A stretch of DNA of 64,000 bases. Source: Macrostomum hystrix. Lineage: Eukaryota > Animalia > Platyhelminthes. Below the pieces are notes generated by a model. The model was not told the DNA's origin, made no database searches, and saw only the letters and a list, made by a program, of their open reading frames with translations. The position numbers and the translations under genes are program-made. The stretch is from assembly GCA_950097015.1 (NCBI GenBank), contig CATNEN010000002.1, positions 1,860,001 through 1,924,000 of the forward strand. The letters run 5' to 3'. This document shows, piece after piece, positions 26,576-50,486 of this stretch; the first letter of the stretch is position 1, and each line of letters starts with the position of its first letter.

Positions 26576-27226
26576 ATGACCAAGGCTCGTCCCGGAAGAC
26601 CTCGCATTCTGTGCTATGACCAGCGCTACTTCTGCCGCATGACCCTCTGGCTGGAGCTGATGGTGGGCATAATCATGACCATCCTTGGCCTGTTCATTCT
26701 CCTACTCAGTATCGAGTCCTTGAAGGCTGGCGACTACGCGGCGGTGTATTTCTGCTCCTCGTTCATCGTACTGGGAGTTGTCCTGCTGCTGGTGTACTAC
26801 ATCCACTACTACGCATTGAAGCTGTCAGTCAAGCGGCAGGTGCAGAAGCTTGACGCCAGCATCAAGTCCGACCAGGACGCTCTGGCGGCTCTGGCCAGGC
26901 GCGGCCTGCAGTTCTCGAAATTCGCCGCGGTACGTCAGAGCCAGCCGCAGCCGCAGCCGCAGCTCGCCAGCACATCCGTTGAAGTCGTTGCTCAGAACTT
27001 TGACAGCAGGGAGATTGAAGAAGCAGGAGCCGGTGCTACAACAGATGACATTGTTGAGCAGCCTGATGCAGATACATCCGCCAGACGCTGGAGTCGTCAG
27101 CAATCCGGGTTGAGCGCTCAACCGAGTCAGGCGCATCGGGACGACGTCGACGACAATGACGGAATGTCGAGAGTGAGCCTGACGGATTTGGACAATATCT
27201 GGGAGACCCGACAGACGACTGTATGA
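26576..27226 (+). CDS. Uncharacterised two-transmembrane protein (216 aa)
   Basis: ATG 26576 in CAATCATGA; exon-like GC-rich codon usage; two hydrophobic stretches (LWLELMVGIIMTILGLFILLLSI; AAVYFCSSFIVLGVVLLLVYYIHYY) then a polar low-complexity tail. Confidence 0.7.
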   Translation: MTKARPGRPRILCYDQRYFCRMTLWLELMVGIIMTILGLFILLLSIESLKAGDYAAVYFCSSFIVLGVVLLLVYYIHYYALKLSVKRQVQKLDASIKSDQDALAALARRGLQFSKFAAVRQSQPQPQPQLASTSVEVVAQNFDSREIEEAGAGATTDDIVEQPDADTSARRWSRQQSGLSAQPSQAHRDDVDDNDGMSRVSLTDLDNIWETRQTTV

Positions 27227-40443: not shown

Positions 40444-42835
40444 CCTTAGTGACGTCTTCCATTTTCAGTGACGTCTTCCATTTTCAGTAACGTATTCTAT
40501 TTTTAGTGACGTCTTCAATCCATAGTGGTGTCATCCATCCTTAGTCACGTCTATCGTGCTTAGTGACGTCATCAATCTAAGTTAGTGGCGTCTTCCATTC
40601 TTAGCGATGTCTTCCAGCTTTAGCGACGTCTTTCATCATTAGTGACGTCTTCCATCCTTAGCATGTCTTTTATTTTTAGTGACGTCGTCCATCCTTAGTG
40701 ACGTCTTCCATCATTAGCGACGTCTTTCATCACTAGTGACGTCTTCCACCTTAGTGAAGTCTTCCATCCTTAGTGACGTCTAGCATTTTTAGTGTTGTGT
40801 TCCATCTAAGTTAGTGACGTCTTCCATCCTTAGTGGCGTCTTCTGTTTTTAGTGACGTCTTCCATCCTTAGTGAAGTCTTCCATCCTTAGTGACGTCTAG
40901 CATTTTTAGTGTTGTGTTCCATCTAAGTTAGTGACGTCTTCCATCTAAGTTAATGACGTCTTCCATCCTTAGTGGCGTCTTCCGTTTTTAGTGACTTCTT
41001 CCATCCTTAGTGGCGCCTTCCGTTTTTAGTGACTTCTTCCATCCTTAGCGGCGTCTTCCGTTTTTAGTGACTTCTTCCATCCTTAGCGAAGTCTTTTATC
41101 TTTAATGACGTCTTCCATCCTTAGCGATGTCTTTCATCTTTAGTGACGTCCTCCATCCTTAGTGACGTTTTCTATCCTTATGTAAGCCTTGCAAATAGGC
41201 TTCAGAACATCGTATTTGCATGGCTCACATGATTCGCGTACACGACGAGGCGTCCGTGGATCGATACGGCCCAGGAATGTGAGGAAGAAGTTCGGCGAGC
41301 GTTCGCTGGGGAGCGTGTGTGTGTGGGACAAAGAAACAGCTGCCCCTGTGTTAGCAATCTCCCAGCGTTTCTCCCTCTCTCCCCATTCTGCCTCTGTTGT
41401 GCGCGCTGCTTGAATTTAAATATACTGGAAGCGAGAGGCAGAGCTTCGCTGCCGCTTTTCATGTGACCCCGGAGTCCACACAGAAACGGGCCTCTGGCCC
41501 GTGGAGCGTTTATCTCTCTGTTGCTGTGGCAGAAGGTAACAGGAAGACAAAACTTTCCTGTTATACGTGGTTCCCTGAGAGAGAGAGTCACCCTTTTCGC
41601 CTTTGTCAACGATGGGTGATTGCCGAAAGGTTCCTACACCGCTAGACACCAGATTCCTGCAACGGCTTCAGAGAGAAACGAACAGAACGAACGTAACGTC
41701 ATCAGAAAAAGCTATGCGACGCAGTCAACGTACCAGCAACTGAGTAGCTATCTACAATTCAGTATTGGCAGTAACTATCTACAATTCACGACCATCAACC
41801 TGGACAAAAAACTGCAAATTAACCTCAAATGCTCTACTAGTTTTGGATTTGGTCAGACTACGGCAGCATGTGACAATGAAAAACAAAAGCGGTCGCAGTG
41901 GGCTCTAATCGTGTTTTGGCCTACGAGCCAGTTACTCACTGATACTAAATTTGCATGCACAAAAGACATGCCCTACGTGAAGTAGGTGTGAGCTTCACCG
42001 ATTAACCAACTCGACTGCAAATGCTCGAAGAGAAGCCTGAGCTGCAACCCAGCAAGTCCGAAGAGGCTGTGGACAGTGGGTGCAGGCCAGGACAATTGCT
42101 GCAATAAGAAGACCAAATCGGGATCGCACGGCTCATCTGAAGCAACTTGGAAGAAAACCTGGCCTAAACTGAACAGAAGCTGCTGACTAGAATTTTTATC
42201 TCCCTCAATTTTTCGGCAAGCGGACTGGCTGGTACGGATCTACGCGTCGTGTCACCCCGAGACAACGTCATCATCAGGACAATTCAAGAAGAACGCGATC
42301 CAGACTGCCAAAGCACTGACAGGAGTGTCAGATAGAAAAAACCGGGGTATATGTAAGCCTTGCAAATAGGCTTCAGAACATCGTATTTGCATGGCTCACA
42401 TGATTCGCGTACACGACGAGGCGTCCGTGGATCGATATGGCCCAGGAATGTGAGGAAGAAGTTCGGCGAGCGTTCGCTGGGGAGCGTGTGCGTGTGGGAC
42501 AAAGAAACAGCTGCCCCTGTGTTAGCGATCTCCCAGCGTTTCTCCCTCTCTCCCCATTCTGCCTCTGTTGTGCGCGCTGCTTGAATTTAAATACACTGGA
42601 AGCGAGAGGCAGAGCTTCGCTGCCGCTTTTCATGTTACTCCGGAGTCCACACAGAAACGGGCCTCTGGCCCGTGGAGCGTTTATCTCTCTGTTGCTGTGG
42701 CAGAAGGTAACAGGAAGACAAAACTTTCCTGTTATACCTTAGTGACGTCTTCAATTAGCGACGTCTTTCATCATTAGTGACGTCTTCCATCCTTAATGGC
42801 GTCTTTCATTCCCAGGGACATCCTCCATATTTAGC
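40444..42835. repeat. Minisatellite, ~19-bp unit (TTAGTGACGTCTTCCATCC), split by the LTR element at 41181-42736
   Basis: Units at 40444-41180 resume in register at 42737-~42835. Confidence 0.9.
41181..42736 (+). mobile_element. Non-autonomous LTR retroelement (TRIM-like), 1556 bp
   Basis: 385-bp direct repeats 41181-41565 and 42352-42736 (TGTAA...TTATA, 6 mismatches); 5-bp TSD CCTTA (41176-41180, 42737-42741); TGGTTCCCTGA at 41568-41578 matches the 3' end of eukaryotic tRNA-Glu (PBS); purine-rich GATAGAAAAAACCGGGG before the 3' LTR; no gag/pol recognisable in the 786-bp interior. Confidence 0.88.
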
Positions 42836-43212
42836 GGCGATGTTTTGCATTCGCATTTTTGCAAAAAAAATGGCGTCTAGAAGAAACTTTTCGGTTTTAT
42901 ATTATCGATCAGAATTTGGGCATAAAATTGTACTTTAATCTTTGTAAGAACAGGAGCAGCTCATTTCCTCTCCTATGTTGAGTACGTACAAAAACGTACA
43001 GCTCAACTCCTTCCCAAAATGTATTGCAGGCGATTTTTATTCCTTTAGTGCGATAAGCTCTTGCAACTATAAGATTTAGCCTCCATGCCATTTTTCTATC
43101 CGTCGGACAGTACAAAAGTCTGACAATACACGGCTAGCCCCTGAACCATTTTACACAGCAATCCGTGACAGTCTTTAAAGCAAAAGAACGGCGACTGATT
43201 CAAACTTCTGTA

Positions 43213-46200
43213 ATGTCGACCTGTAAACTCATCTCAGAAGATTTAAAAAAAGTAGGTGAAATTGCGAAACAGTTTCAACTTTTATGGTCTGACAGGAATT
43301 TTTCTCAAATTGGGATCAAGCCAGATCCAGTTGAAGAGAAACTGAAGTTGATACAAGCTTTCATGAGTTGCTTTGTCAATCAAAATCTGCGAGATTGGTT
43401 CTGCGGGTTGACCGTGATTTTCTTTGCCATAGAAGAAGACGTGGGATCATCTTTAATTTTCTTTGTGTATGCCATCGCTGATTTGCAAGTCCGTGACAGT
43501 TTCTGCGCTCAGGCAGCAGAAGACTCCGCTAGAAAAGGAAAATGGGACGTTGTCTGCTTTCTCACTGACGCAGTTACCGACAGCAGCCTAAGAACCAAAA
43601 TCTGTTTGAAACTAGCCAACTTCCTTTTTTCTGAAGCGGCCACTCAGCCTAATTGGATTGTATTCAAAGATCTGGTGCGTAAAATTTCAGATGAAAGCAT
43701 TAAGGAGCAGTTTTGTTTAACATGCACTGAAATTGCTGCGGGAAATATGGACGCAAAGACGCTTTCAGCCGTCGTCAACTCGACGCAAGCATCACCAGCT
43801 CCGTCAGCTGAGGGCGCAGCAATTCCACCCCGCTGGCTCATCAGGAAGTCCTGCTGTCAGAAACCCCTGCTTGCCCTGCTGTCACATCTCACCGTCTCTG
43901 GCGACAACTCAATCCTGCATTGCACTCTGGCTCAGATGCAGCCAGCTCAGGTCACGGAACTGCTCTGTCTCTTAATCACTCAAGGCCACGTTGCATTGGC
44001 TGCAGCACTGGTTGGTGATGAGAGCTTCAGCAAAGAATATGTCGACCAGCGAGATGACACTGGAGCCACAGCGCTTATGCTGGCGGCTGATGAAGGTCAT
44101 CACGAGCTGATCAAGCAGCTGCTGGATCTCGGAGCATTATCGGATGCTGCAGACAGTCAGGGTCGGACTGCACTGACACGAGCAAACAATGCAGACCAAA
44201 TGAGAGCTGTCAAAGCTCTGGAAGACAGAAGAAAAGATCATCGCGACCACGTTGATGATGAAGTTCGTACTTCGAAGCTGATGAATAAAAATCAACGACA
44301 ACAGCGAAAACTTAAAAAAAATATGGAGTCGAGTAGAAGTTGCAGAAAGAGCAAGTGAGTCTGAACTTTGAATTCTTACAAAGCTATAAAGTGTTATCTG
44401 TCCATCTTCAAATTAGTTTTTAACCTGTTTCTTAAATCAAATCCACGTTTTAGGACGCGAATCCAAGAGGAAAATCAGCTGAGCCTTGACCTCCACAATA
44501 TTCTTTGCCGTGCTGGGTTCACCCAACAAAGAGCACAGTGTCAGCAGGTGCTAGCTGACTCACTGGAAAGTTTCGCGAGTCAACTAATCAGTTTTGAACT
44601 CCGCCGAGAGATGACGGGCAGCTTCTCAGAGGGCTGGGCAAACAGCTTAGTACAAGTGAACGGCAGGACAGGGGCCGACTCTGACATTGACTGGACGATA
44701 TTCCTTGCCAGAGAGATGCTCCATCTTGAGGGCCAATGCAATTGCAGCAATGCGAAACTGCTTAAGGTCAAAGAGGGTCACGCCCTGGTGGATGTTGGAC
44801 AGGGTAAGGAATGTAGGTAACAAACCTTTCATTAAGTTCTACTTAACCAGAGCATGGATGTTATTAAGAACATAATATTCATGTCAAGCACCGGGTTTTG
44901 TCGATACTCCGATTGCCTGAGCTCTGGTCACGATAAGGCTTCTTATTACGAGTAATGCTCTCAGTCCTTAGGGTCGTCTTCCATCATTTAGCGTCGTCCT
45001 CTATCCTTAGCGACGTCTTCCACCTTAGCGACGTCTTCCCCCTTAGCGACATCTTCCACCTTAGCGACATCTTTCATCCTTAGTGATATCTTCCACCTTA
45101 GCGATGTCTTCCACCTTAGTGACGTCTTCCACATTAGCGACGTCTTCCACCTTAGCGACGTATTTCGTCATTAGCGACGTCTTCCACCCTTAGCGACGTC
45201 TTCCATCTAAGTTAGTGACGTTTTCAATTAAGGTTAGTGACGTCTTCTATCTAAGTTAGTGACTTCTTCCACCTTAGCGACGTCTTCCATCCTTTGCGAC
45301 GTCTTCCACCTTAGCGATATCTTTCATCCTTAGTGACGTCTTCCACCTTAGCGAAGTCTTCCACCTTAGCGACATCTTTCATCCTTAGCGACGTCTTCCA
45401 CCTTAGCGAAGTCTTCCATCCTTAGCGACGTCTTTCACCTTAGCGACATCTTTGGTCATTAGTGACATCCTCTATCTTTAGCGACATCTTTCATTCTTTG
45501 CACTGACCTCCATAATAAAAAGAAAAGTTAGTTTTTTGATGTTCTCGATGTGGATAGAAATACATTTTCTGGGGCTGTCAAAAGACAAGGGACAAGGGAT
45601 ATCGGTTTGCATTTTCTGTGCTTAGAAGTTGAGTATGCTACAAGTGACCTTGGCAAATCGGCCATTCACCATTTCAGGCAGCCAGCCGGCAGTAACTGCA
45701 GCCGCATGCGGGGTGCGACCGGCGCAGGACGAGTGCCATGCGATCCAGTGCTGCAGCGGGTTCGGCTCCGATCAGCAAAGGCTCCTGCAGGACAGTTGCC
45801 ACTTTCATGTTCACTTGGTGAAAGCAACCAGACCGAATTCAAAAAACGAACTTAGACTGAGTTTCAGCTTTCAAGAAAAACAAATCATGAGAAATCTGTG
45901 CATTATTCAAGGCCAACTCTTCACAATTATCAAGTTTATCTTTAAGAGGCACCTGCCAATTACCCTAGCAACGCCAGGACTCAAAACCTACCACGCCAAG
46001 ACTCTGCTCTTCCACATGCTTGACAAGCATAGGATGTATAACTTTGCACGCTGGAAACCAGAGAATCTGATCGCCCTGCTGGAGGAGTCTCTCGACATGA
46101 TGCTGGGCTTCATCGACTCCAACGACTCACCCGATGAGTGCATGCCGCATTTCTTCATTCCTAACGCTCGACTCTACTTCAAGAATGCTGGAATTGGAGG

Positions 46201-47068
46201 TGAATTCAAAAACACAAAGCAGAAGGTTCGAGACAGACTAAGAGAAATAAGAGACGATGTGAGAGTAGTGATAGGGCTCTTTAGAAAAGTATTGCGACAG
46301 CTGAGATCAGAAAACTATTACTTCCACCCGTTCACTCTGTTGCCACTGACCGAACCGTCTGTGCTTGTTAGTGAAAGAGACACACTTCATACTTCGTACA
46401 TAAGTGAAGTATACAAAACAGTTTATTTGTGGATGAAGGTGTCAGAGTCGACTTCAAATACTGATGATCTTCTCAACTTTTTATCATCTAAACGGTTCAA
46501 CATAATGATCGAGCTGCCACAGTGCAGGTGTGCAGCGCTGTGCATGGCCGCTGTGATTCACCTTGCACTAAGAGACTTAGAGGCGGCTCAAACGTGCGTG
46601 AGGCAGCTTCTTGGTCATCGAGTTCGATCAGCGTGGAAACCTGAAGAGATTTTGGATGCTTTTCTGGACGATGACTCTGACTGGGCCTGGAGGTTCTGCA
46701 TCCTGTGCGACAAACCGCCCAGCTATCAGTTCCTCCCCGAGTTTACGCGGACTCTGCTCACAGCCAGAATGTCTCAGCCTCGCTCCAACCACCTGTACGT
46801 GAACTTTCGCTGCCTGACCTGGAGTCTCCAAGCTGAGCTGCCTCACACTCGCTCAGCAATCGACTTCGAGGCTTGGCACGCAGAGCTGCAAGAGGACCCG
46901 GACATGGAGGAGCTGTACACTTTGGCTCACTACAGCGACCAACTCGAGCACGTGGATTTCTGCCTGCAGCAGATGGAGGCCATCAGAGATGAGAAACGCG
47001 TCGTTATGGACACGCAGGATGAAGAGAAGATCCGCTACGTCAGTAAAAAACTGGAGAGACTCAGATGA
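43213..47068 (+). CDS. Ankyrin-repeat + Mab-21/cGAS-like nucleotidyltransferase (cGLR-like) fusion, ~960 aa
   Basis: Exons 43213-44354, 44454-44803, 45678-47068; introns 44355-44453 (phase 2) and 44804-45677 (phase 1), GT-AG, in frame (2883 nt). Ankyrin: DQRDDTGATALMLAADEGHHELIKQLLDLGA..DSQGRTAL. NTase: TGSFSEG-x13-DSDID. Mab-21 motifs: HLVK..ELRLSFSFQEK, LKTYHAKTLLF, W.PENLIALL, CMPHFFIPN. A possible acceptor at 43158 means an upstream exon may exist. Confidence 0.85.
44965..45500. repeat. Intronic minisatellite, ~18-19-bp unit (TTAGCGACGTCTTCCACC), same family as 40444-42835
   Basis: Shares TTAGYGACGTCTTCCA core with the upstream array; lies in intron 44804-45677. Confidence 0.9.
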
Positions 47069-47559
47069 TGTCAAAGCAGCCGAAATTATTTTGTGATGGT
47101 CCTATCGGAACATAGGGAATCTAATGAGACATCTAAAAATAGATTAGTGCCTATCTTATGGAAAATTAATTGAGGAGATGGCTCATGTCAGTTTTTTGAC
47201 TCATCCTTTGATATTGCGACAACGAGGACGAGTAGCTCTAATAACTGAGTCACAATTTAACAAGCCTTGTTTTCTCTTTGAAATGTTCAGGTACGTTTTA
47301 TATTTTTTATGCTTTAAGTGGTATGTAAAGTTTCTCGCATCCCAATTATTCACACTATGGAACCAAAAATATAGAAGCTCGCGATGTTTTTTTCGGAATC
47401 TGGATTTTCCGGACCACAACAGGCTGACTGAGTTACGTTACGAGCGTAGAAAGCGAAATAACAAATCTACGTCTTTGCTGAAGCTTTTTTTGCCTACCTG
47501 TTTCAGCTAGTGAAAGTGCTTTAAGCAACTTTTTTACTTATTTTTCGGTTTTTACGCAA

Positions 47560-48880
47560 TGTTCCCGCTGACATTCCCGCTGACATTCCCACTGACATTC
47601 CCGCTGACACTCCTGCTGACATTCCCGCTGACATTCCCGCTGACATTCCCGCTGACACTCCTGCAGACATTCCCGCTGACACTCCTGCAGACATTCCCGC
47701 TGACACTCCTGCTGACATTCCCGCTGACATTCCCGCTGACATTCCCGCTGACACTCCTGCTGACATTCCCGCTGACACTCCTGCTGACATTCCCGCTGAC
47801 ACTCCTGCTGACATTCCCGCTGACACTCCTGCTGACATTCCCGCTGACATTCCCGCTGACATTCCCGCTGACATTCCCGCTGACACTCCTGCTGACATTC
47901 CTGCTGACATTCCCGCTGACATTCCCGCTGACACTCCTGCTGACATTCCCGCTGAAACTCCTGCAGACATTCCCGCTGACATTCCCGCTGACATTCCCGC
48001 TGACACTCCTGCTGACATTCCTGCTGACATTCCCGCTGTCATTCCCGCTGACACTCCTGCTGACATTCCCGCTGACACTCCTGCAGACATTCCCGCTAAC
48101 ATTCCCGCTGACATTCCCGCTGACACTCCTGCTGACATTCCCGCTGACACTCCTGCTGACATTCCCGCTGACATTCCCGCTGACATTCCCGCTGACACTC
48201 CTGCAGACATTCCCGCTGACACTCCTGCAGACATTCCCGCTAACATTCCCGCTGACATTCCCGCTGACACTCCTGCTGACATTCCCGCTGACACTCCTGC
48301 AGACATTCCCGCTAACATTCCCGCTGACATTCCCGCTGACACTCCTGCTGACATTCCCGCTGACACTCCTGCTGACATTCCCGCTGACATTCCCGCTGAC
48401 ATTCCCGCTGACACTCCTGCAGACATTCCCGCTGACACTCCTGCAGACATTCCCGCTGACATTCCCGCTGACATTCCCGCTGACACTCCTGCTGACATTC
48501 CCGCTGACACTCCTGCTGACATTCCCGCTGACACTCCTGCTGACATTCCCGCTGACATTCCCGCTGACATTCCCACTGACACTCCTGCTGACGTTCCCGC
48601 TGACACTCCTGCTGAAATTCCCGCTGACATTCTCGCTGACATTCCCGCTGACGATCCCGCTGACATTCTCGCTGACATTCCCGCTGACAATCCCGCTGAC
48701 ATTCCCGCTGACATTCTCGCTGACATTCTCGCTGGCATACCCGCTGACATTCTCGCTAACACTCCTGCTGACATTCCCGCTGACATTCCCGCTGCCAATC
48801 CCGCTGACATTCCGATTGATATTCCCGCTGACAATCCTCTGAAACTGATGACACTCCTGCTGACATTCCCGCTGACAATC
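47560..48880. repeat. Minisatellite, 12-bp unit (GCTGACATTCCC / GCTGACACTCCT)
   Basis: About 110 tandem units; source of three long artefactual ORFs. Confidence 0.95.
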
Positions 48881-49327
48881 CCACTGACATTTCCGTATTG
48901 AGTAAGAACCTTTACAACACAATTCAGCTCTGAAAGTTTATACACCCTCTAAGCACAATGTGCACTGAGCTAAGATAAGATTTTAGATAAATTTCAGCAC
49001 AGCCAACAACTAGCCTTCTGTGTCGATTTTGACCTTTTTAAGTGGTGGGCAACGCAAACTCTATGACTGCATTGTCTATTACTAAACTAAATAAAGCGAT
49101 GCGCAATTATTCACAGAGATTGCATTTCCGGTGAAAGGAAGACCGCCATTATGAAATGAAATTGCACTCGGCCTATAGCACAACAGCCAAACAGATTAAA
49201 AGCTTTGCACCGCAAACCTATAAATAGCGGGCAGAGTTTGCAGCCATAAAACTTTTACCAATAGCCACAAATCAGAAAGCTAGACCTTTTTATTTTGGAT
49301 TTCTAAAAAACTAAAAAACTAGCAAAA

Positions 49328-50486
49328 ATGCTGCGAACGATGTTAAACAGTTTCTGCTGTACAGGACTATTGCTCACGCTGGTCATTGTAGCATTTCACT
49401 GCCACGCAATGGTGCAAGCAGAAGCCGCAGATAACGACTGCGCCAATGTTGGTGAGTGAAATTATATTTTTATTTATCCTTTTAAATTAGAAAATTAATA
49501 TTGAAATGGCTTTTAACTTACACAGATACGTACTAAATAAAACTAACTTTAATTTTAAAGAGCACCCACCACCCCAATCTTAAAATGGGCAACCATGCAC
49601 CACCCCATTCTTACGAGCGTAGAAGGGCACCCAACACCCCATTCTTAGAAGGGCACCCACCATCCTATTCTTGGAAGAGCACCCACCACCCCATTCTTAG
49701 AAGGGCACCCACCATCCTATTCTTGGAAGAGCACCCACCACCCCATTCTTAGAAGGGCACCCACCACCCCATTCTTAGAAGGGCACCCACCACCCCATTC
49801 TTAGGAGTGCTCCCACCACCCGTTTCTTAGAAGAGCACCCACCACCCCATTCTTAGGAGGGCACCCACCACCCGTTTCTTAGAAGAGCATCCACCACTCC
49901 ATTCTTAGAAGAGCACCCACCACCCCATTCTTAGAAGAGCGACCCAACCCGTTTCTTAGAAGAGCACCCACCACCCCATTCCTAGAAGAGCATTCACAGT
50001 TTTCATATGCCTAAATGCAAATCTTCAGGCACCGACGATGACGATGGTGAGAGTGTCATCTGCGGCCGCGTGGCCTACGTGTCAGACGGCGACACACTCC
50101 GCCTGACTTCGGACGACAACGACGAAAACCGCGAAACTCTGCGCATCCGGCTGGTGCAGATCGACGCGCCGGAGTTGGCGCAGCCGCACGGCGAGGCGGC
50201 GAGAGACGCCCTGCGCCAGATGGCGCCAAACGGTGCTCGAGTTTGCATCCTTGCCGACAGCCGAGACATCTACGGCCGCACTCTGGGTCGGGTCTGCCGC
50301 GGCTCGGACGATTTGAATCGGCGCCTAGTAGCCGAGGGTCACGCCTGGTGTTACAGGGGCCGCTGCCAGCGCGACTACAGGGCGGCTGAGACTCAGGCGC
50401 GCGCGGCAAGGCGCGGACTGTGGGCTGCGCCAGCGATGGCGCCGTGGATCTATCGGCAGCAGCAGCGGCGTCCAAGATCTGCTTGA
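49328..50486 (+). CDS. Secreted single-domain staphylococcal nuclease-like (thermonuclease) protein, 193 aa
   Basis: Exon 1 49328-49451 (MLRTMLNSFCCTGLLLTLVIVAFHCHA, signal-peptide-like) joined by phase-1 GT-AG intron 49452-50028 to exon 2 50029-50486. SNase motifs VSDGDTL, IRLVQIDAPE, DIYGRTLG, LNRRLVAEGHAW, AETQARAARRGLW. Confidence 0.88.
49560..49990. repeat. Intronic minisatellite, 26-bp unit (GAAGGGCACCCACCACCCCATTCTTA)
   Basis: Tandem units in the nuclease gene intron. Confidence 0.9.

Follow-up and report, generated by a model that had tools for sequence, protein, structure and literature searches.

A predicted three-exon gene joining ankyrin repeats to a cGAS-like receptor core in the flatworm Macrostomum hystrix

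Among the cGAS-like receptors (cGLRs) described by Li et al. (2023; PMC9980059), some carry ankyrin or TPR modules, and "most platyhelminthes" were reported there to have only Mab21-like proteins. Here we describe a gene of the flatworm Macrostomum hystrix that, judging from its sequence, very probably joins ankyrin repeats to a cGAS-like enzyme across three exons of one gene; it occupies positions 43213-47068 on the + strand of a 64,000-nucleotide stretch (GenBank assembly GCA_950097015.1, contig CATNEN010000002.1, forward-strand positions 1,860,001 to 1,924,000), to which we refer throughout as the window. As a kind of protein it is not new: both ankyrin-cGLR fusions and the Macrostomum subfamily are already present in Li et al. 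(2023; PMC9980059), and in all likelihood the gene belongs to a large, lineage-specific ankyrin-cGLR family of Macrostomum, of which this subfamily has been catalogued.

The nearest described proteins come from M. lignano, five of whose proteins were cloned for a 140-protein screen (Table S3 of Li et al., 2023; PMC9980059), none of them being mentioned in the text of that paper. Two of the five, entries 92 and 93 of the table (PAA93208.1, from BOX15_Mlig001946g3, and PAA68676.1, from BOX15_Mlig016402g1), resemble the window copy in having MTGS...DSDIDW, the strand GVRPAQD[TE]CHAI, the shortened segment after the CC pair, the same Mab-21_C motifs and the same C-terminal domain, and their identity to it is expected to be ~55-60 %, as for the M. 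lignano protein P0001 (see below). They differ in coming from another species and in that the constructs published for them comprise core and tail only, the ankyrin part having been removed; the window copy, for its part, has only two to three recognisable ankyrin repeats, placed behind what is probably a degenerate array.

More distant relatives share the core and differ in what surrounds it. Human and mouse cGAS (7ftu, 6ct9, 4k9b) have the same bilobal fold over the whole catalytic domain (Z ~20 over 263 residues, for a model of P0001) along with the GS motif, the acidic triad, RxSxSxxE and YHxK, whereas identity in the structural alignments is only 17-22 %, GS and DxD are separated by 20 residues in the window protein but by 11 in cGAS, and the third Asp follows after ~52 residues rather than ~90; in addition, the core of the window protein is not strongly basic, and ankyrin and TPR-like domains have been added to it. 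Drosophila cGLR1 (8gjy) is the best match by sequence profile (8.5e-8), and Cv-cGLR1 of Crassostrea virginica (8gjw) equals cGAS as a match by fold, but these two enzymes are activated by double-stranded DNA or double-stranded RNA and their products are known. The ankyrin-cGLR fusions of the coral Stylophora pistillata (Fig. 1C of PMC9980059) likewise attach protein-interaction repeats to a cGLR core, whereas the window protein has an extra conserved TPR-like tail and probably represents a fusion that arose separately, within a flatworm-specific clade. MAB21L1 (5eog/5eom) has the same fold and is matched in sequence over Mab-21_C (0.0046 to 4e-4), but Mab21L1/2/3 are described as having no predicted functional active site (Fig. 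1 legend of PMC9980059), whereas the window protein keeps GS, DxD and the third Asp.

The locus consists of three + strand open reading frames (ORFs; 43165-44358, 44368-44820 and 45629-47068), the first two of which are in the same frame, and it is single-copy within the window. Exon 1 (43213-44354) begins at the first ATG of ORF 43165-44358 and provides 380 codons plus 2 nt for a helical N-terminal region, ankyrin repeats and, after these, a basic K/R-rich linker; exon 2 (44454-44803) provides the spine helix and the first half of the nucleotidyltransferase lobe, with 58-60 % identity to M. lignano homologues; and exon 3 (45678-47068; 462 full codons and the stop) provides the remainder of the core and the C-terminal domain. 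Intron 1 (44355-44453) is a GT-AG intron of 99 nt in phase 2, with the donor GTGAGT at 44355, the acceptor TTTTAG ending at 44453, a split Lys codon (AA/G) and two TGA codons in frame, and intron 2 (44804-45677) is a GT-AG intron of 874 nt in phase 1, with the donor GTAAGG at 44804, the acceptor TTTCAG ending at 45677 and a split Gly codon (G/GC). Spliced in this way, the coding sequence runs for 2880 nt (960 codons) from the first ATG (43213). A first-pass annotation of the sequence had linked the three ORFs through two phase-compatible introns, and the splice sites lie exactly where it placed them, with positions and phases matched in the gene for P0001: the last intron of that gene, in phase 1, falls in the same Gly codon before SQPAV as intron 2, and its pre-core intron, in phase 2, lies no more than 2 residues from the position of intron 1. 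Moreover, P0001, P0003, P0018 and other M. lignano proteins are continuous across both proposed junctions.

For the comparisons that follow, the exons were searched separately, the homologue P0001 served to test the core fold, and the C-terminal domain was folded from the window's own exon 3. A word search with exon 3 recovered 16 M. lignano homologues, the best of which, P0001 (770 aa; Pfam Ank and Mab-21_C), is 59 % identical over all of exon 3 (E 1.5e-164); no protein in the library is identical to the window product, the best being 59-65 % identical. A profile built from seven sequences had 524 matches among 1.84 billion representatives, 76 of them at E <= 1e-30, and every match we looked up that covers both lobes comes from M. 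lignano, the matches beyond ~1e-12 covering the Mab-21_C part only. We then aligned with hhalign a profile of 44 family sequences (to whose first row the window exons are 58-59 % identical) against 12 canonical invertebrate Mab-21 proteins (10 of which match PF03281 and all 12 PF20266, one being a named cGAS of Mytilus), and obtained a probability of 99.87 % and E 1.7e-31 over 292 columns spanning both lobes, in a register that aligns GS, SDxD, the third Asp, RxSxSxxE, YHxK and CPxxF. The proposal that ankyrin repeats and a Mab-21 (cGLR) core are fused in one chain is thus borne out by the homologues and by the profile comparison. Against the sequences in the PDB, all 40 matches of the 44-sequence profile are to cGLR1, cGAS or MAB21L1, with Drosophila cGLR1 the best; the seven-sequence profile gives weak Mab-21_C matches only, and phmmer searches of the PDB sequences with single exons return nothing for exon 2 and one chance match, to myosin, for exon 3.

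The catalytic motifs can be followed through the 44-sequence alignment. The MTGS motif (h[QT]GS) at 44611-44622 (+ strand, as are all features of the gene) supplies G436 and S437 of the 960-aa model, which are kept in all 44 and in 43 of the sequences, respectively, and are aligned with the GS of canonical Mab-21 proteins. Twenty residues further on, DSDIDW (44677-44694) supplies the catalytic pair D458 and D460, kept in 40 and 39 of the 44 and aligned with the canonical SDxD. The third-Asp strand, RPAQDECHAIQCC (45716-45754), places D515 52 residues after DIDW; this Asp is kept in 38/44 and, by both the family alignment and hhalign, stands in register with the Asp of the canonical D-x-V-x-A strand, a stretch that reads RPAQDECHAI in the window protein and RPA[VMF]D-x-V-x-A, as in RPAMDLVPAF, in the wider Macrostomum family. 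The V-D-V of exon 2 (ALVDVGQ) was considered as the third acid and rejected, its Asp not being conserved in the family and lying only 31 residues after DIDW. Beyond the triad, LRLSFSFQEK (45851-45880) is the counterpart of the nucleotide-binding motif WRLSFSxxEK of cGAS (R in 40, S in 42 and E in 43 of the 44 sequences; aligned with mouse cGAS WRLSFSHTEK and with WRISFSxQER), and the HhH/H2TH-like Mab-21_C domain (45956-46174; Pfam PF20266) includes CMPHFFIP (46139-46162) and LKTYHAKTLLF (45980-46012), in which LKTYHAK matches the nucleotide-contact motif Y-H-x-K of cGAS.

These alignments uphold what the first-pass annotation had read from the core. Its GS and DxD both stand in the catalytic columns of the canonical proteins (hhalign), and its match by eye of QDECHAI to the DxVPAI strand is confirmed by the 44-sequence and the profile-profile alignments. 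The Mab-21 helices that it noted correspond to the PF20266 match (26.3 bits against a gathering threshold of 24.1; E 8.4e-6; residues 110-182 of ORF 45629-47068), and the shortening that it suspected between the third Asp and HLV is real, there being 27 residues in the window protein, whereas canonical Mab-21 proteins and the wider Macrostomum family have 41-43: the subfamily of the window copy is ~15 residues shorter after the CC pair.

The predicted fold agrees with the sequence motifs. AlphaFold2, run on P0001:175-520 with the 44-sequence alignment, returned a model with a predicted local distance difference test score (pLDDT) of 91.3 and a predicted template-modeling score (pTM) of 0.92, for which Foldseek ranks only cGAS and MAB21L1 structures among its top 50 matches (E from 1.5e-9). 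With VIA-align, residues 6-319 of the model superpose on residues 162-521 of human cGAS (Z 20.1; 263 residues; root-mean-square deviation 3.5 A), such that the comparison with cGAS proposed in the first-pass annotation, made here on the homologue, matches both lobes; with Cv-cGLR1, VIA gives Z 19.3. In the model G49-S50 follow the strand 45-48, D71 and D73 open the strand 71-85, and D133 lies in the strand 131-140, and this predicted placement of GS and the three Asp is the canonical topology. An origin from OAS or from a bacterial CD-NTase was rejected, every sequence and fold match being to cGAS, cGLR or MAB21L1.

Li et al. (2023; PMC9980059) recognize cGLRs by an h[QT]GS motif, 8-20 residues, [DE]h[DE]h and a third acid, h[DE]h, 50-90 residues on, together with homology over two lobes (the core and a C-terminal helix bundle) and the predicted fold, and the window protein reads M-T-G-S, 20 residues, D-I-D-W in the first of these. 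Across the family, all five catalytic positions are kept in 37/44 representatives; of the seven others, six have at least one catalytic residue replaced (with more than one position lost in P0013, P0026 and P0105), and the gene model of the seventh, P0020, is simply missing the DxD stretch. Because 37 of the 44 retain all five positions, selection on catalysis would appear to operate in most members, the window copy included. On these grounds of motif and modeled fold, we lean, with a little better than even confidence, toward the window protein being a ligand-activated nucleotidyltransferase of the cGLR type. Such a protein would rest inactive until a ligand switches the enzyme on; the activated enzyme would condense two nucleoside triphosphates to form a nucleotide second messenger, cyclic or linear, to be read by a downstream receptor, and the ankyrin array and TPR-like tail would act as protein-binding or regulatory modules. 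That the pathway is one of innate immunity is a tentative suggestion, to which we give slightly less than an even chance.

Several observations weigh against this assignment. None of the 15 enzymes reported as active by Li et al. (2023; PMC9980059) is from a flatworm, their sources being insects, anemones, molluscs, hydras and corals. The spacing of 20 residues between GS and DxD is the upper limit of the published motif; and the third Asp, at a spacing of 52 that fits the range of 50-90, is flanked by the polar residues Q and E, leaving the literal h[DE]h unmatched, although Li et al. (2023; PMC9980059) accepted members of the subfamily with Q-D-T at the third acid. Whereas the cGLRs that sense nucleic acids have an isoelectric point above 8.5 (Li et al., 2023; PMC9980059), the core of the window protein is not markedly basic (K+R 41, D+E 37). 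PF03281 has no match at E <= 1 in exon 2, in exon 3 or in seven M. lignano homologues: the N-lobe is too diverged for this single-family hidden Markov model, and is recovered by the profile-profile and fold comparisons. Finally, the joining of the exons is predicted from the splice sites and from homology to M. lignano, and the fold of the core from the 59 %-identical homologue P0001:175-520.

The main rival reading, which we regard as unlikely yet well worth weighing, is that the protein is a non-catalytic scaffold, a pseudo-enzyme in which the cGAS fold and the acidic residues have been kept by inertia or for nucleotide binding only, that makes no second messenger and acts in the manner of Mab21L1/2, through the binding of proteins or nucleotides by its ankyrin and TPR-like modules. 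The failure of PF03281 to recognize the N-lobe would be in keeping with this, as would the remodeling of the third-Asp strand to Q-D-E-C and the loss, relative to related proteins, of ~15 residues from the segment behind it. Non-catalytic members of the family do exist, catalytic residues having clearly been lost from P0013, P0105, P0026, P0029 and P0023, and no M. lignano construct was named as active in the 140-protein screen (PMC9980059). However, Li et al. (2023; PMC9980059) state that many cGLRs show no activity in vitro because the right ligand is missing, and the retention of the five catalytic positions by most of the family, along with the R/S/S/E and Y-H-K contacts, is as purifying selection on catalysis predicts, which argues for an enzyme of the cGLR type over a scaffold.

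The N-lobe of the window protein also contains a cluster of His and Cys residues, made up of HLEGQCNC (44722-44745; H-x4-C-x-C) and the CC at 45749-45754, of which the His is kept in 41/44 family sequences and Cys in 37, 39 and 42. This conservation suggests a candidate zinc site, situated elsewhere in the sequence than the zinc thumb of cGAS. It is conceivable, if improbable, that the Q-D-[TE]-C strand, the 15-residue deletion and the His/Cys cluster together mark an enzyme with another substrate pair or with a ligand other than nucleic acid that is bound by its ankyrin and TPR-like modules, and that its product may feed STING proteins; if true, this would amount to a complete pathway of the cGLR-STING type in a phylum for which its loss has long been claimed. 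The suggestion of the first-pass annotation that such a protein could sense a different ligand or make a different product is likewise speculative.

Two further readings concern the gene rather than the activity of its product. It is very improbable that the locus holds two genes, one for an ankyrin protein ending at the TGA at 44356-44358 and the other for a separate cGAS-like protein starting downstream. Retention of intron 1 would indeed halt translation, and some M. lignano models (e.g., the 659-aa P0002) are without ankyrin repeats; but the sites of intron 1 are canonical, its phase fits and it has an M. lignano counterpart, at least 10 paralogue models have Ank and core in one chain, and exon 2 has no start codon of its own, because its only Met directly precedes the GS motif, so that a separate protein starting there would be without the spine helix. 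Equally hard to credit is a recently dead, still intact-looking copy of this expanded family, which, large as it is and with some of its models fragmentary, is represented here by a 2880-nt reading frame without stop or frameshift, with intact splice sites and with every catalytic and structural motif kept, the nearest M. lignano protein being 59 % identical.

Upstream of the core, two to three ankyrin repeats are recognisable at 43990-44220 (residues 276-352 of ORF 43165-44358), where Pfam reports Ank_2 (PF12796; 5.6e-10) and Ank (PF00023; 6.7e-6), each above its gathering threshold (40.1 bits against 27.3, and 26.6 against 21.1), in line with the helical, ankyrin-bearing N-terminus of the first-pass annotation. 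The 259 amino acids in front of them (43213-43989) match no Pfam family, and an Atlas search with this region gave scores of at most 0.85, with weak leads to ankyrin. They are, however, 30-39 % identical to the N-terminal regions of the M. lignano proteins P0018, P0019, P0006, P0017 and P0081, which Pfam does call Ank (in P0018, Ank_2 at 1e-49 in eight stretches), and they align with P0018 in several registers, as repeats do. From this alignment of paralogues, the 259 residues are probably a degenerate ankyrin array.

The other end of the protein is formed by a family-specific C-terminal domain of 232 aa (46370-47065), predicted to be mostly helical, as the first-pass annotation had said of its C-terminal extension, and TPR-like. 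The domain is conserved in the M. lignano family, 27 of 29 aligned tails reaching through it, and is a hallmark of the family. AlphaFold predicts its fold from the window sequence with pLDDT 89.2 and pTM 0.87, but we found no specific structural relative with Foldseek, VIA or Atlas: Foldseek had no match in the PDB (best E 0.29), the best VIA score (Z 9.2, to the TPR-like domains of RopB/Rgg) is below the meaningful level for helical repeats, and Atlas gave a TM of 0.51 to a TPR protein. In two M. lignano paralogues, P0010 (792 aa) and P0013 (713 aa), the family domain is followed by a long hydrophobic tail, by which these proteins could be membrane-anchored; P0013 also lacks the DxD motif, and the window copy lacks such a tail.

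The sequence in and around the gene is rich in tandem repeats. More than half of intron 2 is an 18-bp minisatellite of ~26 copies (CCTTAGCGACGTCTTCCA; 44966-45452), related units of 19 bp, in ~4 copies, closely precede the gene at 42739-42809, and directly downstream, at 47562-48895, a 24-bp minisatellite of ~56 copies with 88 % matches accounts for three long but spurious ORFs, distributed over both strands (47521-48945, 47552-48922 and 47559-48842). Scanning 41000-49500 against Rfam yielded no match. Elsewhere in the window, on the minus strand at 26669-27225, two stretches are 59-62 % identical to residues 61-92 and 170-248 of P0086 (M. lignano, 1606 aa); the longer of them has two in-frame stops and the matching part of P0086 is without a Pfam family, and the region may be a gene fragment. 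Parts of a further M. lignano model, P0041 (3379 aa), match the antisense translation of exons 2-3 (44464-46270; 46-56 % identity), and this model is probably a mis-called chimera in the M. lignano annotation.

Flatworms are usually said to have neither cGAS nor STING, both having been lost (Wu et al., 2014, PMC4117786; planarian survey, PMC13563047). Macrostomum is an exception, with a very large private expansion of ankyrin-cGLR genes, to which a second species now contributes, at this locus, one intact member that keeps its catalytic residues; the subfamily is thereby seen to be conserved between species at ~59 % identity. The locus adds no new principle, and its value lies in supplying a correctly spliced model for annotation and a candidate for biochemical de-orphaning.

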